The notes beneath the pieces are model-generated. The model searched no databases. It was not told where the DNA came from and saw only the letters and a list, made by a program, of their open reading frames with translations. The translations under genes were made by a program, and so were the position numbers. 60,688 nt of DNA from Selaginella moellendorffii (lineage: Eukaryota > Plantae > Lycopodiophyta): contig NW_003314464.1 in NCBI RefSeq assembly GCF_000143415.4, positions 1-60,688 on the forward strand, given 5' to 3'. Below are positions 14,734-36,605 of this stretch, in pieces. Position 1 is the stretch's first letter. Every line of letters begins with the position of its first letter.

Positions 14734-14735
14734 AA

Positions 14736-14757
14736 GCTCTATTTTGTTAAAGTGGGA
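14736..14757 (+). repeat. Left terminal inverted repeat
   Basis: GCTCTATTTTGTTAAAGTGGGA, the exact reverse complement of 35970-35991. Confidence 0.95.
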
Positions 14758-17700
14758 ATTGTCATTATCCCACTTGTAAAATAAGGTTTCCAAACCTTTA
14801 TATAGTATATAAATATAACAAAATTCAACTACATTGAAGCACATGCCATTTTATTTTAAACAAGGAAATGTCTACTCAATCACTTCTCCTCCCCCTGCCA
14901 CTGCTTCACCTCTCTCTTCTCTTTGTCATCGTCGTCCAATTTCTTTCCATCCTTTTAATATTGGCTCAGTTGCTCCAAGTCTAGGTGGAGCCCAAGTCCC
15001 CATTCAATCTTTACTTTCCCCCTATTAATAAAACAACTTCGTAAACTTCCAATAACATGTTGTAACACTTCTAGTATAATGCAAATCCTCTCAAAGAATT
15101 GTCTTTTAATATTAATACAATGGCATGGAACCCCATGCCATAATAAGTTACATTTTTAAATAAATACATGCCATCTCAGACTGTTATTTTTTTCCTCCAA
15201 CGCCTATACAATAATCTTGGAATTTCATCACTCTCCACACTATCAGGATTTAAACCCAATAGTAATGCCATCTCTTCTCTAATACATCCACGCTCATGTT
15301 CAGTGGTCGAAGAACCCATCCGGTTGAGCAGATTATAGAGATGCGGATAGTGCTTGGCTAGACAATATACATGCCATAAATGATGACTGGTGTCTGTCAG
15401 ACCAAATGGCTTCTGATATACCGTTCCATCTGCCATTTGGTTGATTTCTGCAGCCACCTTCTGGACTGGCCGGTTCTCTATCACCATCGCTCCAAGCCGT
15501 TTTGCAAGGTCCCCTAGAACATACGGTTTCTTCTCCCTAGTTTCCATACTACAAGAGATGGGGTGCACTGCATATGTGTGCGTGTTCGTTGCAGTTTTAA
15601 TCGGCGAGTCATCGATGATGAGGATTTCACTTGACCTAGCAGTCCGGTTCATCACTACAGCCTCTGGCTTGACGAAGATGGGCTTGCTACCCCTCACATG
15701 GACCATAGTCAAGCAATCCTCCTGCGTTAGGAGAAAGTCAAATGGTAATATTACTCGCGTTTGATCGTGCATCATCTGTAGCAATGTTAATGCATTGTGG
15801 CGCATCATGGATGTCCAAACTCCCAATTGCAAATTGAACCCGGCCCTTTGTTTTAAGTGTCGCATGGTCATTATTAGATCCCGCAGTTTCTCCCGTGTGA
15901 TTAATGTGAATCTATCTCTTTTGACCAACTTGCGACCGCAGGCTTTGGAGGGTGCAGTGACATTCGAGGACGAGCCACGCTCATGGGAGAAAAGGACACC
16001 GTTCAGATAAAAAACGATACAGTACCTTTGCCGTGACTCTGAAATGAAATGCATTAGCATAAAAAATGGTACAAGTCAATTTTACCATCTACAATATTAG
16101 CGAATGGTGCTCCCGATGGTCGTTGAGAGGGTTTTGGTCGAGGAAACGTGAAGGGTGGAAATACTCTCCTCTGCAATGTGGGGTCAATCGCATTCGATGG
16201 CGTGTGGGCACATGCCATTTCAGCTGTAGACTCTGGTACAACTGGCTCAACAGTGGCATGGGGTGGTTCCGATGGCGTGTGATCACACGCCATTTCAGCT
16301 GGTGCCTCTGTTGGCAAAGTGGACATGACCGAACAGGCAGCAAGGGCGGTGTAGGGAGGTTCCAACGGCGCATAGTCAGACGATTGGGCACACGTTGAGT
16401 CCGTTAGAAATGAGGATACGACCGGCTTGGCGGCTGGGGCGGCCTCATGCGGGTCCAATGGCGCCTGGTCACCGTCAGTTGGATACGTGGACAAGATTGA
16501 CTCAGTGGTATGGGCAGCATCAAGTGGAGTGTGGTCAGCTTGCTTGGCGTTGATATGGATAGTAGCCTCCACCAGCTCTGATGACTCTTGCAGGCAAGTA
16601 GAGTCCACTGGCGGATCCATATGCATGTCCAAATATCTCCCTTCGATTGAGATGGTATCCTCCCTACTAGCTACTAAAAACAAACTCATTAGCACATTGA
16701 ATCGACTATACTGTATTTACCATCAACTACTATTGAGGAACTAGGACCGATATCACTTGGGCACACTGCTGATTCTGAAGAATTGGACATATGTTTCGAC
16801 CCTTGCTTGGCACTATCCTTCCTTGACACTAAAGGCTAGAGTTTGTATCTTAATTCAACTGAATAATCTCTACTTACCATTTGCTCTGCGACCTACATGG
16901 ACAATGTTAGAAATGGTAAAAGGTTAGGAATGGATGTACTATTATTTACCTGATGGTTTGTCTTGTATGACCTTCCTCCGCTGCTCTTTGGCCACCTCAG
17001 GCTGGCTATCGTCGTCATCATCGTCGTCGTTGTTATTGTGATCGTCACCATTGTGAGGACCATCTAAGTCCTCTTCGTCCTCCTCTTCTTTGTCCTCCTC
17101 TTCGTCCTTCTGCTCTTCCTGCTCATTATCTTTCTCTGGCTCCTCATCCCCCTCCTGCATTTCTTCCATAGGCTGCTTAGGCTGGATGGCTTGTTCTTCT
17201 GGGACCATCTTGGGAAAATCATCTGGCCAAGTCTCCATCTCAAAATACAAGACATCCATAGCCTGTTTTAGTGCGTGACCTAGGACCGTATCCTCACCCG
17301 ACTGTCTTAACATGGTTTTTACACGTTCTTGCACCCTTTGAAGATGACGAGATGAGAAAAATGTGGCCCTGACTTGAAAAGCATCCCTCATCTATTGTAC
17401 CTCTTCATTGAGATTGGGGAAGGGGAGTCTGCTATAGGAATCTGAGTCAGGAGGTGGTGACTGGCTGCTTTCACTCAGCCCTTGATCTGCAATGAATGGC
17501 ATGAGCACACACGCCATAACCGTGAGGCATTACGTATCATCTTTTCGTTGCCCTTCTTCCTTTTCGAATCAAAAGCCTCTGATCCCGACGATTGTCCAAC
17601 GTGCTTTCGCTTTTTATGACCACTGTCAGTTTGAGCTTGGCTGGTGCTTGCCTGTTTTGCCTTTGAAGAAGTGTCTCCTGCTAGGAATGGCATGAGACCA

Positions 17701-18466
17701 CACGCCATTGCAAATATAATTTGTACCTCCTTTTTTCCTATTGCTTGTCTGTTTGTCCTTTTTCGACGCGCCACCAGTGCGCTTTTCAGTCCTCGTGTCT
17801 GAATATTCACAACGATCTATAATCAAAATGGCGTGAGGCCTCACGTGACCTTACCTTGTGCAGGTTGTGAGCTCGGCCCAACATGGGTATCTTCAACAGT
17901 AGCTGTTAACGCCGTTTCAGCATCTGGGGGTGGCCACGCTCCTGCATACAGAGCTTGTGAGATAACATTTAAACTTAAAGTGCGTACTCACCAGGTTCGC
18001 AGAGAAGATACTGTTTTTCTTTGGCAACTGTAATTATATGCTCCATTGAAGTCACCTCTTCAATGGAGTTTGTCACCGCAACACACGGGACACCCTTGAG
18101 TAGTGCGGCTCGAAAGAATAGTCCGCCGCAGTTGTACTCGACAACGCATTTGCCCTTGGAGTCGGAAGCAGGTGACCCACCCGCTATTGCGTTGAAGACC
18201 CAGCTGAGCATTTCCCATGCTGCACCTGGAGCTTTCTCTGGATTCGAAAGCTCCATAGCCATCTTCAGTTCCTCAGGCACGGGTAAATTGACCTCCCTCA
18301 GATCAATTCGATCGGCCTTGTCGAACGAAGCTGGGAAGTCACTCCAGTCCCACTCTGCTGCAGGACCAATAACAAGGGCGAGTGTGAAGATGCGGACATT
18401 CGTTGGTATCTTCTTCTTAGCCATTATCCCATGGATCTCCCGCATCTCCTTGCCTTTCAATCGAGC

Positions 18467-19631
18467 TGTAAGGAACCGACTCCCCGAGATGTCGTAGGCT
18501 AAAGGATCCCCAAAAGCTTGACCGAAATGACAAAGAGTTCATCGGATGGGACCAAGTCGAAGATCGAGTCCAAGACCAACTCTAGGACCGAGTTCGAGAT
18601 AGAGTCCAGAATCGAGTCCGAGACCGACTCGGGGACCGAGTTTGAGTCCGAGTTCGACACCGAGTTCGAGACGGAGTCCGAGATCCGAAATCGGGTCCGA
18701 GACCGAGTCCAAGGTCGAGTCCGAGGTCGGGTCCGAGATCGGGTTCGAGATCGAGTCCGAGATCGAGTCCGAGACCAAATCCGAAGTCGGATCCGAAATC
18801 GGGTCCGAGATCGAGCCAGAGACTAAGTCCAAATACTAATACGGGTCAAGGGGTGAAAGCCCAAAGCGTGCATCTCCCAGGGGGGGGGGGGGGGGGCTGC
18901 AGGGGGTTCCAAAAGTATAGTAGGGATAGTGAGGTCCAGGAACCAGTCTTGAAGGAACTCTCCGGTGGTGCTTCCAAACTGACTTGAGGTTGAGACTGGG
19001 GCCGAGGGGCCTTGGGTGGGAGTGAGCATGGGCCTGAGTGGTGCCGGAGGGGCCACCCAGGGAAGTGCTCAAGAGCAGCTCCCACTCCCGAAAGGGAAAC
19101 CGACTGCGGTGCTCCCGGCTCAGGTGGAGTGGTGCCCCACTTGAGTACCTTGTGGCTCATTGGTCCTCGCCCTTCCTAGGGGCTTGGGCCTTCCCTTCGG
19201 GATGAAAGTGGGGGGGTAGAGGTACCCATACCGGGCCGTTAGGCCATGGTGTTTTGCCCCGACATCCCGAAGCAAGTGCTGCACCCAAGACTTGGGATTT
19301 AGAGGGTCCCATGATCAAGTCTTGTGGTACCAAGGGGTGTTAGGAATCTGGAGGCTTGGTGTGCTTGGCTGTTTGTGCCTGCGGGGAGTGTAGCCGAACC
19401 TTAAGTCCAGTCTAACCCGGGGAGGGGGATTGGGAGAGATTTGGGAATCCGTAGATGGATGGCTAACACTCCGTTGTTCATGTAGTAAGTAGTTGAAACC
19501 AAGTAGGACCAAGTAGGAGCTGGTACCATAGGCGGGAACCTTGGCGAGGGAACTTAGCACAAGCCAAGGCAGAGTTGGTCGGATAGACGAGGTAAGCTGG
19601 CAAATTGGAAAGGAAAAATTTGTGGCTTACA
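18467..19631 (+). repeat. 5' LTR
   Basis: TGTAAGG...GGCTTACA; near-identical to 25548-26703; contains a CCGAGT/CCGAGA hexamer array. Confidence 0.95.
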
Positions 19632-19634
19632 ATT

Positions 19635-19646
19635 TGGTATCAGAGC
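19635..19646 (+). promoter_or_regulatory. Primer-binding site complementary to tRNA-iMet
   Basis: TGGTATCAGAGC, 3 nt after the 5' LTR end. Confidence 0.93.
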
Positions 19647-22600
19647 TTCTTCCTCAGTTCTAGCGAAGGATAGAGGCGGATTGCTGGGAGATGGCGAGGG
19701 CAGGACGTAAGAGAACCCAGGCAGAGACGGAACCTCCTCCAGAGCTGGAGCCTCCGGTCGAACAGGAGGCTATGGATGAGGAATCCTTGCATGAGGAGGA
19801 CTCCAGTGAGGCAACTTCCAAATAGGAGTCTGGTGGTGAGGTTCGGTCGTCCAAGGCTCGATTGGATGCTCTAGAAGGACAATTGGCACAGACCAATGCC
19901 CTGCTAAAGACTCTCATACGCAAGCTAAAGCGTGACGAGAAGCGGAAGAAAAAGCGAAAGACTGCGGATGCTGGTAGCGCAGAAGGTGCGGACCCTTCGG
20001 CAGGGACTGAGGCAAAACCAGACAAGGTCGAAAAGACCAAAGTGGAATCAGTCCCTCAGGCAGTTCCCAAGTACAAACCAAAGCCCCCACCGGTCTTCAA
20101 GGGAGTGAACGACTATAAGGTGGTGGAGGATTGGTTTTACGATATGGAGGACTACTTCCGAGCGTTGTGATTACCGAGCTCAAAGAAGGTCCCATGTGCA
20201 AAACCATACTTGGCGGATAATGCCAAGTCTTGGTGGAGAACGACAGAGGCCAACGAAGGATCGGTGGCCACTTGGGAAATGATGAAGGCAAGGATCCGCG
20301 CAACTTACGTTCCTCCGAATGCTACTCTGCATCTAAGGGACGAGCTGAGTAGGCTGAAGCAGACTGGAACCATTCAGGAGTATGTGAATGGGTTTATGGC
20401 AAAGAGGATACTTGTCACGGACATGGGGGATATGGATGCGTTCCATGCCTTCATATCAGGTTTGCAAACCTTGGCTCGCGGCGAGGTAATGCGGTGGAAC
20501 CCGACCAACTACAAGGAAGCGTTGGATGCGGCCATCAAGGTGCATTTCAACGATAACCTGCGAAAGGGGAACACGACGGGGTCGGGATCCACGTTTAGCA
20601 AAGGGGCCAAACCAAGGGGAACGTTTAGCAGAGGGAAATTCAAGAAGAGTTTCTCTAAGAATGAGTCCTCGAGGTTCCGGAAAGGCAGATCCGATGGCCA
20701 GCGAGCGAGTACTTGGGGGAGCTAAGCGAAAAGAGACAAACCCATGGATAAGAAGGTCAAGTCGTATAGCAGCGTGGGAAACAATGTATGCTACAACTGC
20801 GGTGAAGCAGGACACTTCTCGAGGGAATGTCCCTACTCGAAGAAGGCCAGAGCCAATATGGCCATCAAGTCGGGTGAAGTCCAAACGGAGGTATGTGATC
20901 CAGTCCCTAACTCAAAGTTACTCATTACACAAGCAACTTTGGTAGAGAGTCGTTCGCGACATCTACTAGCCCTCCAAAGGAAGCTCAGAGGTAGCTTTGT
21001 TAAAATCCTTATTGACACGGGTGCTTCGGATAATTTTGTGGCTGCAAACATAGTCTGGCAAGCCGGACTAACGGTGCAGCGGCTAGGCGATCCAAGGACT
21101 ATAGAGTTTGTTCAAGGTAGCCAAAGCACCGATGAGGTACTTCGACAAGCGAGAGTCGAAGTGGGGACTTGGAAGGTGGACATGGATTTCACCATGTTGG
21201 ACATGGCGGGATTTGACGTGATCTTCGGAATGGACTGGTTCAATCGATTTGTGGTAGCCCTGCATGGACAAGGTAGAAATCTTGTGGTACTGGCGAATGC
21301 CCAAGGAAGAAGATCTAGGGTGGAGGCCCAAGATCCAAAGGTAGGGCAAAGCATGGCCAAAGATTCCTGCTTAAACCTGGTGTCCACGAGAGGACAACTA
21401 ACTAAAGGAACTAAGGCGGCCTTTTTGTGCTTACTCTCGGTGAAGAGTGACAAAAAGACAGGAATGGAAGAAGTACCTTTAGTGATCCAGCAGGTGTTGG
21501 ACCAATTCCAGGATACCATGCCGGAGGAGCTACCGGCGGGGCTACCCCCAGCACGACCGATAGAACATAAGATTGAGCTGGTCGAGGGTGCTGAGGCAGT
21601 GGTTCGTCCCCCTTATCGTTTGAACGAAAAAGAACTCAAGGAGCTCAAGTGCCAACTAGAGGAGTTGGTGGACAAAGGGTATGTTAGGTTGAGCAAGTCG
21701 CCGTATGGGGCGCCGGTGTTATTTGTGAAAAAGAAAGATGGATCTATGCGCATGTGCATAGACTACCGGTTGCTCAACAAGTATACAAAGAAGAACAAGT
21801 ACCCTTTGCCAAGGATTGAGGACCTGTTCGATAGGTTGGGAAAGGCAAAATACTTCTCGAGGATTGACCTAAGGTCAGGATACTACCAGATCAGGGTAAC
21901 CGAGGAAGATGTCGAGAAGACAACCTGTCGAACGAGGTATGGGAGCTTTGACTTTCTGGTGATGCCCTTCGGGCTATGTAATGCACCAGTAACGTTTTTG
22001 GTGCTAATGAACCACATCTTTGTACCCTATCTGGATCACTTCGTGGTCGTCTATATCGACGACATCCTGATCTATAGCGAGACGCTAGAGGAGCATGCCG
22101 AACACTTGGCGAAGGTGTTTGAGAAACTAAGGGAACACAAACTGTATGCTAAAGAGAGCAAATGTGACTTTGCTCAACAAGAGGTAAAGTTTCTTGGGCA
22201 TGTGGTGGGCCAGGACGGGCTCAAGGTGGACCCGGAGAAGGTCCAAGCGATCCAGGAATGGGAGCGACCATCCAATGTACACGAGTTGAGGGCATTCCTG
22301 GGGCTATGCAACTACTATCGAAAGTTTATCAGACACTATTCGAGAGTAGCCCTGCCTTTAACGGACCAAACGGGAAAAGGGAAGATGGTGTGGACAGCGG
22401 AATGCGAGGCGGCATTCTTCCACCTCAAAGGGAAGTTGAGGAAGGCTCCCGTATTGGCATTATCAGACTTTGGTAAGGACTTTGAGGTAGAAACGGATGC
22501 TTCGGACTTTGCGTTGGGCACAGTTTGAAGCAAGACAACCATCCGGTAGCGTTCTTCTCGAAGAAGTTGGACAAGGCTCAACGGAAGTGGCCTGCCCACG

Positions 22601-23563
22601 AGAAGGAATTGTTTGTGGTGGTCAAGGTGCTGAAGGAGTGGCGACACTACCTTGGGAGACACTTCAAGGTTTACACGGACAATGTGGCAACGAAACACTT
22701 CTTGTCACAGCCCGACCTAAGAGGGAAACAAGGTCGGTGGGCCAATGCCTTCGCTGAGTTTGATTGCGAGATTCTGTACAAGCCTGGGAAGAGCAACATC
22801 GTGGCGGATGCGCTAAGTCGAAAAGCGAGCTTGAGGTTGGCAATATCCAGCGCAACAGCAACCTTCTGGGACGATGTGCGGATAGCATATGAGAACGATG
22901 GTCTAGCACAAGAAGTGTTGCTGAGGAATCTAGAGGTGCGGGAAGCTCACCAGAGAGGTGAGCTGCCAGCAGAGGAGAAAATGGGCTATGCAGAACGCAA
23001 CGGACTCATCTATTACAAGCAAACGAGGGTGTATGTTCCAGAAGGGGAACTAAGGAAGGTGGCCTTAGAAGAGTGTCATGACGGACCTCTTGCGGGACAC
23101 GACGGAGTGCCCAAGACGATGGGCTTACTCAAAAGGAAGTACCATTGGCCAGATATGGCTAAGGACGTCCAAGACTATGTAAAGACATGTCCAACATGTC
23201 AGCAGGTAAAAGCCGTGACTAAGGCTAGTGGGGGCTTGTTGCAAAGCATCCCAATTCCAGATCGCCCGTGGAAATGTCTTACGATGGACTTCATCACGGG
23301 ACTCCCCCCAAGCGAGGGGTTTGATGCGATATTCGTGGTGGTGGACCGATTTTCTAAAATGGCAAATTTCATACCCACCACAACGGAAGTGGATGCGGAA
23401 GGTGTGGCGAAGCTGTTCTTCGAACAAGTGGTTTGAGTGCGGGGAAGGCTGGAAGAGATCATCTCAGATCGAGATAAAATCTTCACCAGTAGGTTTTGGA
23501 GGACTCTCCTGGAACAGTATCGCACCAAGCTAAAATTCAGCACAGCCTATCACCCACAGACAG

Positions 23564-23610
23564 GTATTGGGTATTAAGTCAAGTTTAATGGCACTAACAC
23601 TTCTTGACAG
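23564..23610 (+). other. 47-nt GT-AG intron in the integrase core
   Basis: HPQT-G|GTATTG...CACTAAC...TTGACAG|AC-GQT. Splicing restores [12 protein letters not shown]. Confidence 0.85.
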
Positions 23611-24028
23611 ACGGACAAACAAAAAGGGTGAATAGGCAGCTGGAGGATTATTTGCGATGCTATGTCTCGGGAGACCAGACCGATTGGGTAAGTCATTTGG
23701 GACTTGCGGACATGTGTTATAACAACTCACCACATTTGAGTATCGGGGTGAGTCCATGGGAAGTCATCAATGGGCGAGCTATTGAAGGTCCTGTGGAACT
23801 CGGCGTGGCCGAGTATCATGGAGAGTTGCCCGCAGTAGAGGCATTCACGGCGGAAAGACTCAGCATTTGGAATCTAGTGAGGGATTCCTTGGAACGGGCT
23901 CAACAAAGGCAAACCAAATACGCGAACCAGAAGCGTCGGGATGTAGAGTTCCAAGCTGGGGAGAAGGTGTGGCTGAACACCAAGAACCTCAGACTACCAA
24001 GTGGGATCAGCCGAAAGTTGACCCAAAG

Positions 24029-24080
24029 GTAAAGATGCATGTATTCCTGTAAATGAATTGATCTTGAGTTCCTTAAGCAG
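24029..24080 (+). other. 52-nt GT-AG intron in the integrase C-terminal region
   Basis: KLTQ-AG|GTAAAG...TTAAGCAG|G-FAGPY. Splicing restores KLTQRFAGPYKI. Confidence 0.85.
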
Positions 24081-24351
24081 GTTTGCGGGGCCTTACAAGA
24101 TTGAGGCACGAATCGGTAAAGTGGCTTACCGACTCCGACTTCCTCGAGAGATGGGGAAGATGCACCCAGTGTTCCACGTGAACTTACTCAAGCCGTACTT
24201 TGAGGATCCGCTTCGCAAGGACCAAGTGAGACCTTTACCTGAGGTTATCCAAGGGGAAGAGGAATACGAAGTTGAGGCCATCCTCAATGCGCGCAAGAGC
24301 AAGCGACAAGGACGCAAGGTGAGAGAGTTCCATGTGAAGTGGAAAGGATTT

Positions 24352-25027
24352 TGTAGCGCACCTTATCTCTCTCCCCTTAAGCCAACTGGAAAAGGGGCAA
24401 TTTGCTTGATGAGAGAGCCCTTAGTGGCTATTTTATCCCCATTTATCCCCCAAGGTTCCAAGGATCCACGGTGACAGTATATCCAAATCTCATCCCATGA
24501 TCACATGCGCTACACTCACCCCCCCTTCAGAGATGTCAATGTCCTCATTGACTATTGACTAGCAACCCCTACTGAGCCAAGGGGAACCAGCACCTCCATT
24601 TCCGCACTCAATCTACCAATCCTTCCATTGTGTAGACTAGCTATTCCATGTGAGGCAACTAGTCATCCACCCGTACCGCAGTCCCACGGTGGATACCTTC
24701 GTCCGTGGATACTCCACACAAGAGGAAGGACGTACGCATGGATGCCCAATACGTACGATTTCAAATTTAGGGGTAGGAATATACCTTGCTCAAGGGTATA
24801 TTATACTTTTTAAGTAGCCACTAATCAATGGGAATCGAACCCGTGCCATTTGCTCTGATACCAATTGTACCGCACCTTATCTCTCTCCCCTTAAGCCAAC
24901 TGGAAAAGGGGCAATTGCTTGATGAGAGAGCCCTTAGTGGCTATTTTATCCCCATTTATCCCCCAAGGTTCCAAGGATCCACGGTGACAGTATATCCAAA
25001 TCTCATCCCATGATCACATGCGCTACA
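24352..25027 (-). mobile_element. TRIM (terminal-repeat retrotransposon in miniature), 676 bp
   Basis: LTRs 24352-24514 and 24866-25027 differ by one substitution and one indel and have TGTAGCGCA/TGCGCTACA ends. TSD GATTT at 24347-24351 and 25028-25032. Minus-strand PBS at 24852-24863 and PPT at ~24515-24528. Inserted in the host chromodomain. Confidence 0.95.
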
Positions 25028-25547
25028 GATTTCCACACTGCGAAGCAACATGGGAACCGGAGGAGAACTTAGCGAACGCACGAGATCTAGTGGAGGAATT
25101 TCTGCAAGGCAGAACTCTATGTACTTATGCAAAATTCAATTAAAAATAATCAATTTGCAAAGTTGAGCAAGTGGCATATGTTGGGACCCGAAGGCGCGCC
25201 GAAGGTAAGCTAATTAGCATGGGTTGGATAGGTCGACCAGGCGTAAGGCACTACGCCCGACTCCCCACAGGGATGTCGAATCCGTAGACGTATTCTACGG
25301 AGGTTGGGTTCGAGTCCCAACCCCCTAGTAAAGCAAGGCTGGGTTCAAGTCCCAACCCCATACTAGGGCGTGGTGAGGTTAGGGGTATAGGGACATCTAT
25401 ATTCCGTTGTCATGGGCTTTTGGCCTGGGAGGCTAACTTAGGCACACTGCTAAGTGGGGGGATGCCCCCGGAGACATGGTCAACAAGTCGTGGGATAAAA
25501 CGAGACGTTCGATGTGGGCATCGAACTTCTTCTATGGGTGGTGGAGT

Positions 25548-26703
25548 TGTATAGAACCGACTCCCCGAGATGTCGTAGGCTAAAGGATCCCCAAAAGCTT
25601 GACCGAAATGACAAAGAGTTCATCGGATGGGACCAAGTCGAGGATCGAGTTCAAGACCGACTCTAGGACCAAGTTCGAGATAGAGTTCAGAATCGAGTCC
25701 GAGACCGACTCGGGGACCGAGTTCGAGTCCGAGTTCAAGACCGAGTTCGAGACGGAGTCCGAGATCCGAATTCGGGTCCGAGACCAAGTCCGAGGTTGAG
25801 TCCGAGGTCGGGTCCGAGATCGGCTCCAAGATCGAGTCCAAATCGAGTCCGAGACCGAATCTGAAGTCGGATCCGAAATCGGGTCCGAGATCGAGCCAGA
25901 GACTAAGTCCAAATACTAATACGGGTCAAGGGGTGAAAGCCCAAAGCGTGCGTCTCTCAGCGGGGGGGCTACAGGGGGTTCCAAAAGTATAGTAGGGATA
26001 GTGAGGTCCAGGAACCAGTCTTGAAGGAACTCTCCGGTGGTGCTTCCAAACTGACTTGAGGTTGAGACTGGGGCCGAGGGGCCTTGGGTGGGAGTGAGCA
26101 TGGGCTTGAGTGGTGCCGGAGGGGCCACCCAGGGAAGTGCTCAAGAGCAGCTCCCACTCCCGAAAGGGAAACCGACTGCGGTGCTCCCGGCTCAGGTGGA
26201 GTTGTGCCCCACTTGAGTACCTTGTGGCTCATTGGTCCTCGCCCTTCCTAGGGGCTTCGGCCTTCCCTTCGGGATGGAAGTGGGGGGGTAGAGGTACCCA
26301 TACCGGGCCGTTAGGCCACGGTGTTTTGCCCCGACATCCCGAAGCAAGTGCTGCACCCAAGACTTGGGATTTAGAGGGTCCCATGATCAAGTCTTGTGGT
26401 ACCAAGGGGTGTTAGGAATCTGGAGGCTTGGTGTGCTTGGCTGTTTGTGCCTGCGGGGAGTGTAGCCGAACCTTAAGTCCAGTCTAACCCGGGGAGGGAG
26501 ATTGGGAGAAATTTGGGAATCCGTAGATGGATGGCTAACACTCCGTTGCTCGTGCAGTAAATAGCTGAAACCAAGTAGGACCAAGTAGGAGCTGGTACCA
26601 TAGGCGGGAACCTTGGCGAGGGAACTTAGCACAAGCCAAGGCAGAGTTGGTCGGATAGACGAGGTAAGCTGGCAAATTGGAAAGGAAAAATTTGTGGCTT
26701 ACA
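25548..26703 (+). repeat. 3' LTR
   Basis: TGTATAG...GGCTTACA, followed by TSD CGAGC. Confidence 0.95.
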
Positions 26704-29700
26704 CGAGCCTTCACCTCGTTCAAGGCCTTCCAGAACTTGTGATAGGATTCGGAGTCGTAGATTATATAGTGGACTGAAGATTCCACCTCCGCAAGTCCCA
26801 CCATTAAGTCAATGATGGAGCTGACTTCGTCTGCATGAGTGATCTCCTCGTTTGTGAAGTCCATCACACAAAAGATGTTCTTGACCTGCTCATCTCCGCG
26901 GGAAACGATGCTCCTCCACCTTTAATCCTCATCCAAATTCACGTATACCCAGTAAGGTTCTGGATAGGCCTCTGCTGTGGGGTCGAGCTGTTTCTGAAGC
27001 CGGCGGTCAACATCCCTCTTAATGAAATTTGGATACTGATCCAACTTCTCAGCTTTACTTTTCGTGGCATCCCGCAGCAGATCGATGAACTTGGGGGCCC
27101 CCTTCACGTACTCGTCGATGTCTTCATTTGACAACTCCAGCTCTTCCATCATCTCTTGCGTGGTGTCGATGCTCACCCTCTCCACGGCCACTTGCTCGAA
27201 GATCCAATCCTTCAATAGCGCACGAGCTCTCAGAGTCGTGCACAAGTCCTCGTATGTCATAATATGGCCGGGAGTCATTTTGGTCTTGTTGAAGACTACC
27301 TTACCACGTAGAAGAGCATTAGCCACTGTTAAAAGGTCGTCGTCGTCTAGAGACCGCGAGAAACGCAAGGCGTTGAGCTTCAAATCATTGGGCTTCCGGC
27401 CGTCCTCCACACCCATTGAGTTTAGCAACTCCCCGTTATGGTACCTCCTCAGCACATCTACCCATTTGTCAAAAACAACTTTTGTCGCGAGTAGAATGTT
27501 ATGGATGCTAAGTGTGTCATTGACCCCCACTGTTTTCGAGAGAAGACTCGAGAATTCCTGCAATGGAAATGGCGTGAGGCCACATGCTATGCCACATGCA
27601 ACGAGGCTTACCTGCCAGGTGCTAGTTGCTAGTGCACGTCCTTGTCCTGGTTTTTGTGGCTTCTTCAGTTGAACTCAGAGCTTCCGTATTCGTGCCAATG
27701 TCTCGTGCAGACCCGATTTGTAGCACGTTTCTTGCTTGACATTCTGCGCATGGGAGATGTATATGATAGATCGGAGGGGTGAGTTGCCTTTTATCAGGCG
27801 GACAACTCTTGTCTTGAAGACTTTCTTCACCTCCTCGCCCACCATAATATCCACAACTATCTTTTGCATCGCCAAGCTAGAATGCTGCCCGGAGACGGCA
27901 TAGAACCGGATGTTCTGATCGTCCAACACCTTCCTATTGATCAAGTCTGGAAACCTCGTCTCGCCCTTCATTGTTCGGTAGTAGGGGATCACGTCTACGA
28001 TGTCGGGTGTTACTGGCCTTGCCAGCATCTTCTGCTTCAGTTTCTCCACCCACTCATCAGATACTAGCCTGTGGTTGTATTTGCTTTGGATGTCGATACG
28101 GCTCACGTCGATTGTATATACTTTGTTGGAATAGTAACAAGTACTATTATCTGCGACGATTTTTGCTGCCTCTTCTTGCTCTTTCTGCTCTTTGCAACTC
28201 TTCTTTTTGGTGGGTGTAGTGTTCGAACCCGAGGCAATGGCATCACCGAGTAGCTTCTTTTTTGGAGCAGGAGAGTCGGACGTCGGCTTGAGCTTGACCA
28301 CCCTTTTCTGCTTCGGGGTAGTTTCCAGATCGACCCCCTTCCCCTTCGCTTCACGAACTCGAGGCACTCTCAACAGCTCAATGTTGGAATATAGTTTTTG
28401 AACATCGCCGTAGGTGAGGTCCGTGGATTCCATGTGATCTTCATAGACCCGCAGTGTCTTTGAAATTGTGGGCCTCCTGGACAACCTCTCCCTAGCTCCC
28501 TCTAGGAGTTCCTCATAGCCGCTGCCCCCCTCCGGGAAGCCGCTAGGATGTGCAAGGTGGATCTTGAAGGCGGACGCTGTCTCTACCACAAGTGCCAGTC
28601 CATATTCTTGCATGGAACTGCATGGAGTGTCTGTCACTTGGATAAGGATCCCCATGCATTCTTTTCTCCCACCATCTGTGTTGTACAGCCTCAGATCCTC
28701 GTCTTCCATCCCGAAAGTCCAACTGGTGAGCTCCTCCCCCTTCTCTGCATCCACATTGATAGTGGCTGGAAGAAGAACGCAATTCCTCGCCTGTTCAGAA
28801 ATGCACAACAATTAGAGCTGACAGATGAAAAGCTAGCAGCTAGAAAAAATGTGAGGCCACACGCCATTCACCACTGCATCAGATGTCTTGAGGCTGCATC
28901 CTAAGATGGCGTGAGGCTACACGCCATCTGTAACCGGACTGCACTCGAGAGCCCAATCGGTGCATGCCAATGTTGCTACTGAATGGCATGTGGCCTCATG
29001 CCATTTTCTACTTGGCCTAAAAGACTTACCATTTGAAGCCGAATGGAGGCGTGACAACCGGACTCGTTGGCGAATGTGCACTGTGTGTGCAGCGGATCGT
29101 AGCAGCAAGGCTACTCTGCCACTTACAGTTGGAGAGTGGCGCTGAAATCTCCCGGGACGCCAAGTGGGCTGCGTGTGGGTGGCGGAGTGGGCGGCGGAGT
29201 TGGCGGTGAAGTTACAAACTAGGTGTGTCTTGAAGTGGACGCCGATGCACACGAGCGCGATGCGAGCGCGAGTGTGATGCAAGCGCGAGTGGATGCCGAT
29301 GCACACGAGAAACCTGTAGAGAAGGTAGATGAGCGCCAATGTGAGCGTGATCGCGAGTGGGAGCGCGATGCGAGCATGAGTACGAAGCAAAATGCAAACC
29401 CTAACCTCACACGCGCGAAATGTCACGACGGTTGGTAATCCCACAACGTCATCATTTCTCGGACTTGGGCGCCACCATTAATTTCTGTATCGCCGCGCGT
29501 ATGCATGCACGTGAAATCCAAAAGAAATCCGCAACGTCATCATTCCTCAGACTGCATGCACGCAAAATCCAAAAGAAAGATCATGATTGGGATATCATTT
29601 AATACCCTCGCTATATTTATACCATGCATGATTGGATATTCCAAAGCATCTTGTATTTCCAAAAATGCCAGATGTTCAGCTAAATAAAGAATGGTATACA

Positions 29701-30057
29701 ATGTCCTTCTTGATGACCCTGCAAAGAAGCATCTCGATCAGACACCACATGAGACCACACGAGCCTTACAATGTTTCAGGGGCATTTGCCATAGATCCGA
29801 CCGTTATTTTGCTCCAAGATTCTACAGTTTGGTGTGCATTGACCTTTCCATCAACACTGCAAAGGGACATCACAATCAGATGCGGGATCACAAGAAACTA
29901 ACTTCACTAACTCTGGTTTCACCAAGATCTACGTAAGGAGTTATGAAATGAAAGGACCCTCTCTATTGAAATGTGTTTATGGTCCTAGGGGCATTGTGAC
30001 ATATCATGGATTTTGCATCAAGTTCTGTATTTGCATGTTTATCAAGCTACTGAATTG

Positions 30058-30083
30058 CTAAACCCTAAACCCTAAACCCTAAA
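30058..30083 (+). promoter_or_regulatory. Plant telomere-type (AAACCCT)n / telo-box array between the divergent genes
   Basis: CTAAACCCTAAACCCTAAACCCTAAA. Confidence 0.6.
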
Positions 30084-31205
30084 CATGTGGCAAATGCTGC
30101 ATGAAGAAAGATGCCCTTTCTAGGCAAATGCTGTAAGAGGCAGATGCCGAGCAGATGTATCTCAAGTTAGCGAAGGGGACAAACAAAAGCTAGCTATAAA
30201 CATGACGGGACGCAAATAGATTACTAGGCTGGTCCTGCGAAAATCAAAAACCATAATTGAAAACATTGAAACTGCAAAACGAAAGGTTTATAATATTTTT
30301 GAATTTTAAGCAACCAAAGGAATGTAAGTAGGGCATGTGTTTGTAAGTTTAAAAATGCCTCAACCACTTAAATTCCCAAGTAAATAAAGTTGTTTCTATT
30401 TTTGGTACAGGTAAACTTTATAGCGTGTGGGCTCATGCAATTTTGAACCCAAAAATGCACCAAAAAATGCTTGACTAGCATTATTCTTTGAATGGCGTGT
30501 GGCCTTATATTGCCATAAATGGACGTACACACACAGCATAATTATTCCTTTACACGGCGAATAATCTTGGCGCGGATCGCTGACATGGCATGGCAAAGTT
30601 CGAATCACTGACATGGCACAGCTGGATCGAGGCAAGGACATGATGTGACAAAGTTCAACCTCCGACAGCAAAGTCTAGAAGCTACTCAGTTTGAAATTTG
30701 TCAGAGGAATCATAAGATCTGGTTTGTCAGAGGATTTGATGTGACGTTCAAGCGTGTGTTATTTTTGAATTCTCGAACTCATTCCTAGGTCTATCATTTT
30801 TGTGCGCCGTGTTCTTGGTTTCGCTGAGTGCAGTGAGCGCTACTTGTGTAAGCGGCGTTGTGAGCTGTGGTTTATGCGTCTACGAGCGGTTGCGGCATTG
30901 CGAGCGCCATTGCGAGCGGCAGTTTATGCGAGTGGCAGTTTGTGCGAGCGGCGCTACGAGCAGTTGCGGTGTTGCGAGTGGCACTACAAGTAGTTGCGGT
31001 GTTGCGAGCGGCACTGTCTTTGGTGTGGCTACCGCTTCCTCTTGATATTCGGCACTTGTGCTTCCTGGTATGTTCACCATGGAATGGCTTAGGACCACAT
31101 TTAGAAATGGCATGAGGCCACATGCCATCTTGGGCCCTTGCAATTTCATGGCTAGCGTATTGTCATGTATGTTTTTACTTGCCTGCAGCTGTGTGTATAT
31201 CAAGA

Positions 31206-31395
31206 TGGCATGAGGCCTCATGCCATCTTTGACCCCTGCTAGCCTATTGCCATATTCCTTTTGCCTTGCTGCAACTGTATATATTTTTGTACGGGTGACT
31301 AGTCACACACACAAAAATATATACAGTTGCAGCAAGGCAAAAGGAATATAGCAACAGGCTAGCAGGGGCCAAAGATAGCGTGAGGCCTCATGCCA
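31206..31395. repeat. ~190-bp near-perfect foldback upstream of the transposase
   Basis: Arms are symmetric about 31300/31301 (centre GTGACTAGTCAC); each arm ends in a 22-bp palindrome copy. Confidence 0.9.
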
Positions 31396-31548
31396 ATTTT
31401 GTGAATGCGAAATTTCACGTGGGTGTCAATAGCATGTTTGAATAATGGCATGTGGCCTCATGCTATTGAGGTTGTTTGGTATGTTATGATTTAGCCCATT
31501 CTCCAATCATTTTTTGTATGGTCTTAACTTCTTTTCTGCACTTTCAAA

Positions 31549-34446
31549 ATGGCCTCCGCAAGTGCGACGCATGTTCCCTCCGTGGATATTAAGAACCGTG
31601 CTACATGGATTCAGGTAAAGGTGTTTCTAAACAACCCCGAGGGGGAGGTGGTAGCTGAGGGCTTAGCCACAGTTGTCGATCCAAGAGATGCGGTTGCTAA
31701 TCAAGAATTGGGCTGGGATGATATTGGAGTTGTGATTTTAGAGGTTGTTGACACAGAAGAAAACAGTCTGACTATTGGAAGCATTGTGCGGTGGAAATTG
31801 AGGCACTTAGTGTTTGAGAATGTGAAGGATTCACAATCAAACACCACTACAATTGATGACAGAACATCTCTTCATGGGAAAAGAAAGTACACCTTTCTAA
31901 AGCGCAGCCAAAGGGATCTGAGCAACGAACCGAAAAGGCAGAAAATGGCGATGGAGGTTCGAATGGTCTCGACAGTTGCTTGTTGCAAGAGGAGGTGCTG
32001 TCAACATGCTGATTGGGATGCTATTGAAGAGGAGAGAGCAAGATACAAGACATTGTCCTAGAAGGCAACTCGCAATTTTGTGTATGAGGCATTACAGTCA
32101 TCTGTTGATGCTTCAGAACATCAGGTGGGGGGCATGGTCTTCTAGAAGGGTTTGGTCTGCATGAAGGCATGGAGAATCATTTATGGAGTCCCTCGAACCA
32201 CATTCTATAGAATCAAAACTGAGTTCGAGGAACAAAGGGTTCAACAGGCAGTCCATGGGAACGACGGTACTCACAAAACCAGGGGTCATGTTGTATATGG
32301 AGAGGCAATCTTCAAGAGGTTTATCGAGACATGTAGCGAGCAGCAACCACATAAAACCTGCCTCTTGGAAGATGGAACTCGAGACACCCAACGAGTTCTC
32401 CCTTCCATGTATACCAAGGGGGCCATATTGGAAGATGTGAATCGGGAACTCTAGAGTAATGGCTACAGGAAGTTGAGCCAATCTAGATTTAGTAGATTGT
32501 GGAGCAACAGGTTCAGGGATGTGAGTATAGGAAAGTACTCCAGCTTTTCAAATTGTGACGAGTGCACTGCTATCAAAATGGCTTTGTCGAAGAATTCTTG
32601 CATCGCTCAAGAGCGAGAGACGTTGGTTAGAAGGCGGCTTGACCACAACATCGAGTAGAGAAGCTGCAAGACTGCATATTATCATAACAGGATTCTCTCC
32701 ATGGAGAGACCTGACTCTTACCTCTGCATCATCCACGACAAAATGGACTAGAAAAAGACGTGCTTACCTCGACTCAATCCTGCCCCCAAGGCAATCTCTT
32801 CATCCATGCAGCTGCCTGTGTCTCTGTTTGGCATAATCGCTCATGGGCATGGTGCCCAAAACTATGGGAACTTCTTTGTACCTCTATGGGGTGGCGGGGG
32901 TGCAAACATGATGATTGCGTCCTAGCAAAACACTTAAGGTCTCTGCAAAGTGCGCAGACTGAGCTGAACGGCCAACCCTTGCATAAGGCCCTTGTCGATC
33001 GAACCCCATACGGGGTTCAGCTGGAGGAGGAGCAAAGGCTTGCAGTATTGCGTAGGGCCCCATGCCATCCCAGTGAATATGTTGGCCGTCAGATTGTAGG
33101 GTTATCACGTGAGGCCTCATGCCATTCCGACGAGGCTGGTCGCCCGGTGAATGCACAGCCTCATCCAAACGAAGCAGAATCTCAAGGAAGTTCTTGCAGC
33201 CAATGTGGCCTTCCACCCCATCTTCTGCTCCAAACAGACAATGCTGGCAGTGAGAACAAAAACATGTACGTCTTCGCGTACTTGGCGATGCTTGTTGCCA
33301 AAGGCATATTTGAAACGGTTACACTTGGCTTTCTCATGGTTGGGCACACTCATGAAGACGTCGATGCCATGTTCAGTCACCTGGCAGAGTCCCTCCGGCG
33401 ATCCAATGTCCTCACCCTCCCACAACTCTACGATGAATTCCAAAATTGCATCAAAGGCATTGTTGAAGCTACACTTGTGACAGAGGTTCCAGACTTTAAG
33501 GGGTTTGTAAGAGGCTACATTAGGGACGGATCTGAAATGCTGATTGGCCACTCCAAGCCTCTTCAATTTTATTTCAGCATGCGTGACGGTGCTCCAGTGA
33601 TGAGGTACAAGATGAGAGAATGGGACACAGTGTGGCTGCCAGTGGACGGCATTGAACTCTTCAAGAGAGATCCCATAACTGGGGAACCTATGATTCCTCA
33701 GGGTTCCCCACGGCCGATGCACCCGGATGGACTCAAAGACCAAGAAAGTATAGTGGCCGGGATTAGACAACATATTGCCTTCTGGAAGAGGGGGTTGGTG
33801 TATTGTGGAGAATCCTATTTTAAGAGGTGCAAGCCTTTGCTCGAATACTGGGAGAAGATTATATCTGCTATCCAAAATGGGCCGGTTGTATATGAAGAAT
33901 TGGAAGAGTCCTTTTGGCCAGAACCCAGAGCACCAGATAGTAGCAGAACAATGTCCTCTGGAAATGCAGTGACAGATAACGATGTTGAGGATCACTATTG
34001 TGGGCCGAGGAACAAGAAGCCGAATTCAGCATTCAATCCAATACAAGTCTGCAAAGGAATGGTCGTGCTTGTCAGACCCAGTAATAAAAAAAAAATGATA
34101 TGGGTGGGGCGTTGCATCACTGATGCAGAGGAGGATGCGGAAACTAACTCCTTCAATGTAACTGTGGAGTGGTTCAAGCCAAGTTCTGGATATACGAAGG
34201 ATTGCCTAGAAAAGAGATGGGTGCTGAATCCAAGGGATCCTAGCATGAGCATATCGGTGGATAATGTTGTGCATGGTTGGATGCGGAAGCAGAGTGCCAC
34301 CATCACCTTGCCAGACCATGCAAGAGATGCAGCAAGAGCATTCATAACCCGGGTTCAAGGTGAGATTCATTAATATTCCTTTACTAAGTTTCTAATGTAT
34401 TTTATTTCAAGGTGAACAATCCGAATCTGAATCAGAGGAGGCGTGA
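31549..34446 (+). pseudogene. DDE transposase, Sola/DUF7869-like, with a TNP1/En-Spm-like N-terminus and a BAH/Tudor-like C-terminus
   Basis: One frame from ATG 31549: VAEGL...DP...LG...W; CCKRRCC; VCMKAW...YG; HGN; FSNCDEC...H; LCIIHDKMD. Frameshift at ~32910, then LLLQTDNAGSENKN and FLMVGHTHEDVDAMFS. C-terminus VLVRP...IWVGR...VEWFKP. Last intron 34360-34411, stop at 34446. Five in-frame TAG stops. Confidence 0.85.
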
Positions 34447-35076
34447 TGGCATGTGGCCTTACGCCATTCCTAGGTGAGATGATACAAATAACAAGTATAA
34501 ATTCTTAGTTGTTCTAGCAAATCTTACTTAAAGTTCAAGGTGAACAAGCCGAATATGAATTCATCGGATTGTTATAACAAATTGCGAGGTGATGGCATGA
34601 GGCGATACGCCATTTGAGAGTGGTAGCCATTCCTATATGAGGTGAGTGAAATATTTATTAGAAATACCTCATTCAATTGTGCACTTCTAAGTCTTGGTCC
34701 ACTCAATACTGTTTGCATGTTTTTATTTTAATTCTTTCTCTAAAATGTTATTTAGCATGTGGCTTCATGCCATTGCTCTCCACAATCATGCATTGAATTT
34801 TTCTATCCTTGCATAATACTTCTCCATATATATAGCATGTGCACACATATGATATGGTTCATTAGGCCTGATATAGTGTGTGAGGTAAAACAAAGATGAT
34901 GTGATACCAATCACACGTGCATAAATCTAATAATATGGCGTGTGGCCCATATTAATGGCACATAAACCCATATTGTGGGCTTACGTGCTTTATGTACCAT
35001 CATTCCCTTGCAGCATGTGTGTTGGTTTCCTTTTATAACACAACGAACTCCATATTTTAGGGTGAAGAGCGTTCTC

Positions 35077-35334
35077 ATGGCAAGCACAAAATCTGTAAGT
35101 GAGGTAAAAAAGGAGACGGAGAAGGAGATAGGTGAAGATGTAGAATATATAAGTCTTCCAAACTCCCCGTACTATACTCCAGGTGATCATTTTTCTGAAT
35201 AAACGGCAACATTAACAACTATCGAGAACGCCCCAGTAACGTCAGAGACAACAATCCAAAGCAAAACAACTGACCCAGAGAAGGATGATAGTACCGCTGA
35301 GAGTACCAAAAAGGAGGTGTCCACTAGCGCTTAG
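35077..35334 (+). pseudogene. Possible small acidic/Ser-Thr-rich ORF (85 codons, one internal TAA) inside the transposon
   Basis: MASTKSVSEVKKETEKEIGEDVEYISLPNSPYYTPG...; the frame continues through TAA at 35200 to TAG at 35334. Preceded by a TTTTAG acceptor and followed by a palindrome. Confidence 0.3.
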
Positions 35335-35969
35335 GCTTATAATGGCGTGTGCCCTCATGCCATTTACTTGATCACCAAATACCTTTTTCCCTTTGCACTA
35401 GTATATCTAATACCGGTCTGAGAAATAGAATGGCATGTGCCCTCAGGCCTTTTACTAAATCACCTTTGAAAGAAATGCAAGCCTCTATGTCGTAAAAAAA
35501 AGGTACTAGAGAAATTCCTTAATAATATGAATGTTATTTAGTTTCATGAAAATACACTTAGGGTCAAATGAGTTAAATGACTTCTCCAGACTAGCAATGC
35601 CTCTTGCTACACCTTCACAATTAGATTCATTAGAAAAAGATAATATTGAATAATATCTAAATGTTCTCACCATTAAGTTATATGTCTGGCTAATAGGAAT
35701 GACGTTCATCTTGGAAAGCTCACCACACGCTCAATGAACAAACAAATAGTGTGTGCGCGCATGCCATCGCTCTTCTTTAGCTTCAGATTCAGCTTGTTCA
35801 CCTTGACAATGAGATTTATTATACAACCAGATGGACTCAGTCTGGACACAAAGTCACCGCGCTAGTCACCATGCCCCAGATATGTCTAGCCCCTGGACAA
35901 AAAACATATAATTTCACGTCATTTTCAAATACTTGAAAATTTGTACCTAGTCCCATTTTACTGAATAAA

Positions 35970-35991
35970 TCCCACTTTAACAAAATAGAGC
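35970..35991 (-). repeat. Right terminal inverted repeat
   Basis: TCCCACTTTAACAAAATAGAGC. Confidence 0.95.
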
Positions 35992-35993
35992 AT

Positions 35994-36605
35994 ATATAAA
36001 GAAAAGACTGTGTAATGGTGAAAAGTTAATTGTGACAAAAGCTCTAAAGAGCTTTTGTAGAGAATTGTAAAAGCTCTAAACAATATTATTGAAACTAAAG
36101 TTAAACAAGGACAAGATCAAGGAAAAAGGGTATTACTACCTAGAATTACTTTGAAACCAACTGAAGAAGATATGATTTTTATCTTGAAAAGATAATAATT
36201 TCTTGTAAGATTAGCATTCTCAGTGAATATTTATAAATCATAAGGACAAACTTTAGAAAATATTGGAATTTATTTACCACAAACAGTTTTTGGTCATGGA
36301 CAATTATATGTTGTACTCTCAAGAGGAACATGAAAAGAAAAAATAGTCATGTGTGCTAAAAATTATAAGAGCCAAGGACAGTTAACAATAGAAAATACTC
36401 ATAAAAGTGTAACATACATAAGAAATATTGTATATAAAGAAATTCCTTAAACTTAGAAAATGGAATTATTATACCTTTCCAGTACATAAAAAAACATTTC
36501 ATACTAATGACACACTCTAAAACAGACCAACAGTATTCATATGTACTTTTTAAAATTATGGAATAATGTACATAGCACTCCTAGCGAAGCTGGAACGTTT
36601 ACTTA
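35994..36605 (+). mobile_element. Helitron helicase C-terminus and probable degenerate 3' end (right part)
   Basis: KKRLCNGEKLIV; LPRITL; LAFSVNIYKS*GQTL...VFGHGQLYVVLSR; TRNIVYKEI. Hairpin TCCTAGCGAAGCTGGA at 36579-36594. Confidence 0.88.

Follow-up and report, generated by a model that had tools for sequence, protein, structure and literature searches.

We analyzed a 60,688-nucleotide stretch of Selaginella moellendorffii DNA (contig NW_003314464.1 of assembly GCF_000143415.4, positions 1 to 60,688; hereafter the window) and found that positions 14734-35993 are occupied by an old, inactive copy of a ~13-kb two-gene DNA transposon of the DUF7869 group, bounded by terminal inverted repeats (TIRs). 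We are highly confident of this structural description. The element represents a family with a three-part design, comprising an intron-less transposase of ~940-1330 amino acids (aa), a large accessory (cargo) gene in divergent orientation, and a set of ~13-32 palindromes of 15-22 bp. The sequence of the palindrome is replaced from one lineage of the family to the next, with its length, symmetry, and placement retained. The accessory protein has a predicted ParB/Srx-like domain and may be the partner that binds these sites.

The element measures 13,018 bp once a nested long terminal repeat (LTR) retrotransposon is excised. Near its ends, positions 14736-14757 (GCTCTATTTTGTTAAAGTGGGA) and 35970-35991 form an exact inverted repeat (22 of 22 positions), in agreement with the perfect 22-bp TIRs proposed in a previous reading of the window made from the letters alone (the sequence-only reading). 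The repeats can be extended by two bases to 24 bp, with 23 of the 24 positions matching (AAGCTC.. against ..GAGCAT), which places the left TIR (AAGCTCTATTTTGTTAAAGTGGGA) at 14734-14757 on the plus strand and the right TIR at 35970-35993 on the minus strand. The left junction passes from ..CTGGATAT into AAGCTCTATTTTGTTAAAGTGGGA.. and the right one from ..TCCCACTTTAACAAAATAGAGCAT into ATATAAAG... Two copies of a target-site duplication (TSD), ATAT, were read at 14730-14733 and, from the right junction, at 35994-35997; this 4-bp TSD is based on one complete copy of the element.

The insertion split the 2B domain of a Pif1-type helicase from a Helitron-like remnant (14549-14733, plus strand, resuming at 35998-36067). 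Indeed, the left flank matches positions 1-31 of 47 of the Pfam domain Pif1_2B_dom (E 4.1e-6), with the match ending exactly at the junction, and in silico removal of the element together with one TSD copy restores the in-frame sequence ...MLMHNLDIKKRLCNGEKLIV, as the sequence-only reading had also proposed. An alternative consisting of a 22-bp TIR and a 6-bp TSD was rejected because it breaks the Pif1 frame. The target itself is a degenerate helicase, probably a Helitron remnant, and the open reading frames (ORFs) around it are short and broken.

A second copy was found on contig L001 (Logan run ERR10900155) through the near-identical protein P0018. This contig aligns with window positions 31383-33437 at 97% identity and then jumps to 35860-35991, the mark of an internal deletion. 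It terminates at the base identical to the end of the right TIR, in ..ATAGAGCTT (..GAGCTT), which matches the left tip of the window element, and the DNA beyond is unrelated. As L001 ends at the same terminus next to a different flank, the terminus is real and the element is present elsewhere; its tip also indicates that the true tip is AAGCTC and that the window copy carries a 24-bp TIR with one mismatch. With high confidence, the order of events in the window was insertion into the Pif1/Helitron-like helicase remnant, a later hit by a Ty3/gypsy retrotransposon, and decay.

The transposase was recognized from a 537-aa ORF at 32760-34373, which matches Pfam DUF7869 (PF25273; E 2.9e-39, 135 bits against a cutoff of 26) and has the motifs DKMD, DNAGSENKN, and GHTHEDVD. 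The whole gene is intron-less, has ~940 codons, and extends over 31549-34373 on the plus strand; P0018, encoded by the L001 copy, shows the gene without introns and with its start at 31549. The DDE transposase of the sequence-only reading is thus upheld in its family and motifs, but it is a pseudogene here: compared with L001, it has in-frame stops at 32059, 32143, 32452, 32656, and 32749 and a 1-bp deletion near 32920. L001 carries its own 7-bp deletion as well as a 2.4-kb deletion. Over 1371 aligned bases, 33 of the 37 differences between the two copies are transitions, and the codon changes comprise 13 synonymous and 23 non-synonymous ones, a pattern of neutral decay; both copies are dead. 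The nearest named relatives of the transposase are proteins of the liverworts Riccia and Calypogeia (30-37% identity), the other matches being mostly metagenome proteins, and the homologs found in the database search all carry PF25273. A database protein of 764 aa, P0141 (UniParc UPI0003239915), clusters at 90% identity or more with the L001 transposase.

The features that could be tested all fit a Sola-type element, an assignment that is consistent with the data and not proven. The window element has an AT-rich 4-bp TSD (ATAT), TIRs of 22-24 bp, and a size of 13,018 bp. The ranges given for the Sola superfamily are 11 bp to about 1 kb for TIRs and 2 to over 15 kb for size (PMC10741241), and Sola2 elements of 10-15 kb have the TSDs ATAT, AAAT, and ATTT and TIRs of 12-22 bp (PMC3627910). 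The motifs ..DFKEN.., ..CDNARHFKS.., and ..YHGKSECDQHF.. of Sola2_DFa-2 and PPa-1 (supplement of PMC3627910) have as window counterparts ..DKMDQKK.., ..TDNAGSENKN.., and ..GHTHEDVDAMF.., a likeness of motif pattern judged by eye. A TIR transposon of the Sola kind, as first proposed, agrees with both the DUF7869 transposase and the 4-bp AT-rich TSD. The architecture that it has in common with Sola1-1 of Ectocarpus suggests that the element is probably Sola1-like rather than another type of Sola. DUF7869 and DUF8039 are not mentioned in the papers of our literature search.

The accessory gene lies on the minus strand, where its ORFs run from 28811 to 15179 after excision of the LTR retrotransposon. 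They are found, in order, at 28811-27678 (378 aa), 27674-26925, 26921-17978 (234 aa), 17391-16945, 16716-16057, and 16075-15179, the first three being in a single frame with single stops between them. The length of ~1,640 aa first given for the cargo protein is not retained, since it needs read-through of stops or introns. The N-terminal ORF (E1; 27678-28811, minus strand) encodes a Lys-rich linker and the ParB/Srx-like domain with the motif F.A.SGQHS..A, delimited by alignment, AlphaFold2 (AF2), and Foldseek. The middle region (26709-27563, minus strand), made of E2 and the first part of E3, is collinear with the start of a 1241-aa ORF of the related contig L012 (BLASTP 6e-7), and a splice-acceptor-like TTGCAG is found at a matching position in the window cargo gene, L003, and L012. 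When the LTR retrotransposon is excised, one minus-strand ORF is rejoined as ..ALNEVKARLKGKEMREIHG.., which indicates that a coding exon of the cargo gene was the insertion site of the retrotransposon. The exon part downstream of this insertion (17978-18466, minus strand) aligns with L012 by BLASTP and contains KCVVEYNCGGLFFRAALL, which resembles methyltransferase motif I. The central region (16057-17391, minus strand) is acidic and of low complexity at 17391-16945 and rich in Pro and Thr at 16716-16057, where AEMAC[DA]HTPS repeats and two palindromes are found within the ORF; L012 has a parallel arrangement, in which 9-aa repeats with embedded palindromes come after an acidic stretch. The last ORF (E6; 15179-16075, minus strand) encodes a NIF/FCP1-like domain of the HAD type, identified by Pfam NIF and by homology to contig L018.

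The third part of the design is the palindrome array. A pattern scan for ATGGCRTG-N6-CAYGCCAT gave 21 matches at two or fewer mismatches, where 0.04 would be expected by chance. All 21 are within the element's own 13 kb, and the LTR retrotransposon and the 39 kb of flanking DNA contain none, which bears out the claim of ~20 palindromes confined to the element. Looser matching raises the count to 24. The array, whose 22-bp unit can be written (A)ATGGCRTG-N6-CAYGCCAT(T), extends over 15120-35767 in 21-24 copies, with starts at 15120, 16197, 16272, 17496, 17687, 17828, 27569, 28850, 28906, 28983, 30420, 30492, 31107, 31205, 31375, 31445, 33047, 33104, 34446, 34592, 34752, 35342, 35430, and 35746. 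Ten copies are in the intergenic region between the divergent genes (28850-31466), together with a near-perfect inverted repeat of 190 bp (31206-31395; 95-nt arms, 92% complementary, no spacer) that is built around palindrome copies. Six copies lie between the transposase and the right TIR, and the cargo gene has further copies in its gaps, introns, and low-complexity linkers, as does the transposase in a variable linker (33047 and 33104). The palindromes keep out of conserved domains, and they fall in different reading frames, which argues that they are DNA-level features. Their R and Y positions correspond to CG/CA and CG/TG alternatives, and the CpG observed/expected ratio is 0.66; this suggests an ancestral site ATGGCGTG..CACGCCAT that would have decayed by CpG-to-TpG deamination.

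Homologs of the accessory protein are rare. A phmmer search with the 378-aa ORF gave three weak matches in 1.84 billion representatives. P0053, P0054, and P0055 have the invariant motif F.A.SGQHS..A in common with the window protein, and a profile search with the cargo alignment A2 recovered only P0054 and P0055. P0052 was rejected from among the weak matches as a repetitive false match. No matches were obtained when metagenome contigs were scanned with the cargo alignment or when phages were searched by tblastn with the ParB-like domain.

P0126, a member of a cluster of cargo homologs, is encoded on L012, a 13.4-kb Joint Genome Institute (JGI) metagenome contig. There, a 1328-aa DUF8039+DUF7869 transposase (minus strand, 216-4202) diverges from a plus-strand cargo gene, whose ORFs match E1 (E 9e-8), E2 (2e-6), and E3 (7e-3) of the window in the same order. 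With its intact ORFs and a CpG observed/expected ratio of 0.96, this element looks active, and it recurs in other samples on L013-L017 at 99.3-99.8% identity. L012 carries 32 palindromes of the form RCAACGC-S-GCGTTGY (GCAACGCSGCGTTGC), unlike those of the window in sequence. They are found in the intergenic region (as 26-bp tandem units), the E1-E2 intron, the transposase linker, and the cargo ORF, where 27-bp units encode ARRGVDSAE repeats. The array thus occupies all the window-type places except the subterminal regions, the contig stopping before the ends of the element; for the same reason, no TIRs were found on it. At the right contig end (13150-13409) there are about six direct repeats of 22 bp (AAAGTGAACTATT..) that may be subterminal. 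L003 and L008 repeat the L012 palindrome pattern.

A third lineage was recovered with a profile of the GQHS domain, which gave a weak match at the edge of contig L004; farther along, on the 295-kb metagenome contig L018, the same layout is seen. The cargo gene of L018, which is split into several ORFs, is on the strand opposite to the transposase and ~7.6 kb from it, and it encodes a NIF domain as well as an INGQHS domain (E 1.8e-4). An early reading of L004 as lacking the cargo gene was overturned by this finding, the gene being 7.6 kb upstream, just past the first stretch examined. The palindrome of this lineage, TTATCTTCGA-N-TCGAAGATAA, is present in 13 copies at three or fewer mismatches and in 18 at four or fewer, which flank both gene starts and also sit within the cargo gene. 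Retrotransposon genes of the Ty3 type lie beside or within the L004/L018 element (L018 18024-20789, L004 14052-14999), and a further nested insertion may account for a 6-kb gap between its two palindrome clusters.

In the transposase tree, the window, L012, and L004 fall into three separate groups, two of which are well-supported clades (support values: window with P0001/P0003, 99/98; L012 with the Riccia proteins, 100/100; L004 with P0028, 98/99). The same divergent pair in separated groups of the tree shows that the pairing is old and conserved and not a one-off capture. The idea that the second gene is a trait of the family is supported by this pair in L012 and in L004/L018, from different well-supported clades, and the cargo gene, the transposase, and the palindromes occur together in the window, in L012, and in L004/L018. 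Pack-type capture, which would make the gene a host sequence or passenger that does nothing for the element, would agree with the near absence of this protein family from databases and with the decay of the window copy, yet we consider it very improbable. The gene, its orientation, and its domain order are the same beside the transposase in three deeply diverged lineages, the L012 ORFs are intact, and no unlinked host homolog of the cargo gene was found. P0056, the sole match of the E6 search, was discarded as an ordinary and unrelated NIF-like host gene from a compact eukaryotic genome. For annotation, these large ORFs should be treated as transposon genes and not as host genes.

We assign the GQHS domain of the accessory protein to a ParB/Srx-like fold with moderate confidence. 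An AF2 model based on a 7-sequence family alignment had a pLDDT (predicted local distance difference test score) of 64.6 overall and of roughly 60-89 for residues 10-150 (a first run with a 3-sequence alignment, pLDDT 36, was discarded). In a Foldseek search of this model against the PDB, 31 of the top 32 matches were in the ParB/Srx superfamily, including Noc, ParB bound to cytidine triphosphate (CTP), KorB, sulfiredoxin, and PadC, with a best E-value of 1.2e-3 and a probability of up to 1.00. The predicted fold thus favors the term 'ParB-like' of the sequence-only reading.

The 'HAD' part of that description is supported in the form of a NIF/FCP1-like domain without the catalytic DxDxT. Window E6 matches Pfam NIF (PF03031) with E 6.5e-4 and 19.9 bits, just below the cutoff of 21.8. 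Its homolog in L018 (tblastn with window E6, 7e-6) matches the same domain with E 3.8e-12 and 46.6 bits, and the last ORF of L012 gives a weak NIF match (E 2e-3). UBLCP1 was the best PDB match of the NIF-region profile; sequence searches of the PDB with E1, E3, E6, the profiles, and the 1241-aa ORF of L012 returned nothing significant. In the alignment, the catalytic DxDx(T/V) is replaced by YLNGV in the window, ELVGV in L012, and DLNGV in L018, and the domain is probably a pseudo-phosphatase without activity. A methyltransferase, the third activity proposed, lacks profile support and is not confirmed. The middle part of the protein is poorly conserved across the family, and within it the motif-I-like stretch alone is shared, KCVVEYNCGGLFFRAALL in the window against VLDFFSGGICLKAALM / TVLDFFSGGICLKAALM in L012 (VVEYNCGG / VLDFFSGG; BLASTP E 0.002). 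This stretch resembles motif I of N4/N6 methyltransferases; no N6_N4_Mtase or other Pfam methyltransferase was detected in the ORFs of the window, L012, or L018 at E up to 1, and a DPPY-type motif was not seen.

Element-specific palindromes, with one version per lineage, fit a protein-site pair. Indeed, replacement of the palindromes by lineage with their symmetry and placement kept is the pattern expected of a co-evolving, sequence-specific, dimeric DNA-binding protein. ParB-family proteins (ParB, Noc, and KorB) are the classic case of proteins that bind short palindromes dispersed across a replicon, and KorB provides a precedent for long-range repression; for these reasons, we favor the ParB-like protein over the transposase as the binder. 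The proposed mechanism, in which the accessory protein binds the candidate palindromes of its own element in the manner of KorB or ParB, is one that we judge to have an even chance of being correct. A dimer of the protein would sit on the palindromes as ParB, Noc, and KorB do on parS, NBS, and OB sites, and this binding would mark or regulate the element's own DNA. Possible roles include control of the two divergent promoters and the holding together of donor ends and excised DNA, and the NIF-like module could recruit chromatin factors or factors related to the carboxy-terminal domain (CTD) of RNA polymerase II (Pol II). Protein and sites would co-evolve, leaving each lineage with a private palindrome.

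A more specific version, held only tentatively, is a partition- or repressor-type module of the ParB/KorB kind, in which a ParB-fold protein fused to a pseudoenzyme resembling Pol II CTD phosphatases would act on ~20-30 parS-like sites distributed element-wide. If so, the module would provide every lineage with a system of its own by which its DNA is marked, silenced or insulated, or tethered, and would be a eukaryotic counterpart of the plasmid KorB-OB system. The analogy with VANC proteins, which would give the accessory protein an anti-silencing role, may also apply.

Several observations weigh against a ParB-like binder. The Foldseek E-values are only 1e-3 to 1e-2, with TM-scores (template modeling scores) of 0.33-0.45, and the AF2 model was built on an L012-type homolog that is 25% identical to the window protein. 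The domain had no match in Pfam, NCBIfam, PADLOC, or the PDB sequence search; with Pfam, NCBIfam, and PADLOC at E up to 10, neither ParB nor methyltransferase was found for E1, E2, E3, and their homologs, and hhalign of alignment A1 against F SopB and the F leading-region ParB gave a probability below 1%. The conserved box, [SN]GQHS, has Ser where the GxxR of ParB has Arg (compare GCHR in Srx and DGQHR in DndB), which makes a CTP-clamp chemistry doubtful. Finally, DUF7869 contigs L005, L006, and L010 have arrays and no visible cargo gene, the contigs ending before its expected place, and the transposase itself could be the binder.

These last loci bear on a different explanation, that the palindromes are bound by the N-terminal region of the transposase (DUF8039 or helix-turn-helix-like), for transpososome assembly or promoter autoregulation. 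The subterminal repeats of hAT, CACTA, and P elements are known to aid one or the other of these functions. The ParB-like/NIF-like protein would then serve otherwise, in chromatin or DNA modification or in interference with the Pol II CTD. Apart from L009, every DUF7869 locus whose contig extends far enough upstream has an array of lineage-specific 21-22-bp palindromes immediately before the transposase ORF (20 copies in L005, 23 in L006, 26 in L010, 13 in L018, 32 in L012, and 21 in the window). The array units are CCTATGGC-N6-GCCATAGG in L005, within 153-bp units, AGCTTGGTC-N4-GACCAAGCT in L006, and AGATCAGAC-N3-GTCTGATCT in L010, within units of about 50 bp. There is also a weak HTH_psq-like match in the N-terminus of the transposase. 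However, L005, L006, and L010 stop short of the cargo distance seen in L018 (7.6 kb upstream), so the absence of the gene is unproven. The palindromes also occur throughout the cargo gene and are not clustered at both termini, the left 1.4 kb containing one, and it is ParB-family proteins that are the classic palindrome binders. We therefore regard binding by the transposase as rather unlikely. L009 and L010, which come from one sample, share only 3.65 kb (L009 8719-12358, L010 8242-11881; 95% identical) covering the transposase gene, with a left boundary without TIR. Upstream of the transposase, L010 has palindrome arrays and L009 unrelated DNA, one of the two copies being truncated or rearranged.

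The palindromes could also have no element-encoded partner and be promoter or enhancer elements for host factors, hairpins or cruciforms, sources or targets of small RNAs, or selfish inserts. Tandem arrays are frequent (units of 26-27 bp in L012, 153 bp in L005, and about 50 bp in L010), and palindromes occupy any reading frame inside ORFs, as this explanation would allow. It does not account as readily for a placement that is conserved in three lineages although the sequence is fully replaced, nor for units that are always dyad-symmetric and 15-22 bp long, and we consider it improbable. Binding by the ParB-like accessory protein remains the reading that we prefer.

The nested retrotransposon (18467-26703, plus strand) is a later insertion and no part of the DNA element. 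Its LTRs, at 18467-19631 and 25544-26703, are 1169-bp direct repeats with TG..CA ends and 96% identity in a self-comparison. It has a 5-bp TSD (CGAGC) and a tRNA-Met-type primer-binding site, TGGTATCAGAGC, and its internal ORFs encode, in order, protease, reverse transcriptase, RNase H, and integrase (Pfam), an order that identifies it as Ty3/gypsy. Internal duplications are present at 24351-24514 and 24865-25027, and two tandem 35-bp units at 25301-25370 hold GGTTCGAGTCCCAACC, which resembles a tRNA T-arm. The window as a whole is a transposon nest, with an RVT_1 ORF (E 2.6e-29) at 7102-7893, upstream of the DNA element, and repeat families of 74-89% identity common to 9719-12753 and 42006-43456 in both orientations. 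The flanks (1-14733 and 35994-60688) have a GC content of 25-44% and are strongly depleted in CpG (observed/expected 0.33-0.44), and the corresponding values for the DNA element and the LTR retrotransposon are 46-52% and 0.66-0.72. This contrast suggests a CpG-methylating host and inserts that are younger than the flanks.

Second genes have been reported in Sola elements before, and the suggestion of the sequence-only reading that the architecture was undescribed does not hold: Sola1-1_Ec32 (PMC12477816) and Sola2 with Fanzor1 (PMC3627910) already have them. The chimeric Sola2-Fanzor1 elements of Dictyostelium fasciculatum and Polysphondylium pallidum have a second large gene beside the transposase (PMC3627910). 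They are like the window element in this gene, in their size (10-15 kb), in their TIRs of 12-22 bp, in their AT-rich 4-bp TSDs, which include ATAT, and, by eye, in their motifs (D..N / xDNAxxxK / HGKSxxD..F against DKMD / DNAGSENKN / GHTHEDVD..F). Unlike here, the second gene is Fanzor1 (TnpB-like) and not ParB-like/NIF-like, and palindrome arrays are unreported in these elements.

In CACTA/En-Spm elements, TnpA acts with subterminal 12-bp motifs and is accompanied by TnpD, and PIF/Harbinger elements encode a Myb-like ORF1 protein in addition to the transposase. These systems resemble the window family in having a second element-encoded DNA-binding protein on repeated internal motifs, with binding being a candidate function here. 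The folds are unrelated, and the motifs are subterminal rather than element-wide perfect palindromes.

The KorB protein of plasmid RK2 is a ParB-family protein of a mobile element that binds several palindromic operators of the replicon that encodes it, with silencing at a distance (PMC11790492). KorB-OB, ParB-parS, and Noc-NBS all pair a ParB-family protein with multiple short palindromic sites over the same element, and OB sites are found both in and far from promoters, with long-range repression. In contrast to the window protein, a candidate binder that has GQHS and a NIF-like fusion, these are bacterial systems with a CTP-dependent clamp and GxxR.

The closest published system is the 21.5-kb Sola1-1_Ec32 of Ectocarpus, with an opposite-strand gene for a 1104-aa protein having ParB-like and DNA-methyltransferase domains (PMC12477816; Petroll et al., Genome Biology 2025). 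Both are giant TIR transposons of the Sola type, probably so in the case of the window element, with a divergent accessory gene that has a ParB-like domain, recognized here at the level of the fold. The window element differs by having a motif-I-like stretch only, with no recognizable N4/N6 methyltransferase domain, and the window family differs by an extra C-terminal NIF/FCP1-like pseudo-phosphatase domain. It should be noted that the two accessory proteins are likened here by published description and that the named relatives of our transposase are from liverworts. The string 'palindrom' is absent from the text of PMC12477816, subterminal repeats are likewise unmentioned there, and neither the palindrome arrays nor the NIF-like domain was found described in the literature. 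The two-gene layout has been known in outline from algal Sola1 elements since 2025, and the new points are the lineage-private palindrome arrays and the NIF-like module. This conserved pseudo-phosphatase-like module hints at a link with RNA polymerase II or chromatin, and the element class is extended towards liverwort relatives. No candidate binding site had been available for the idea, put forward in PMC12477816, that the ParB-MTase accessory proteins of Sola1 elements bind their own transposon and modify it. Three lineages now each offer one, with equivalent placement in the promoter region, intron, protein linkers, and transposase linker, and the resulting candidate protein-DNA pairs can be tested with natural specificity swaps between lineages.

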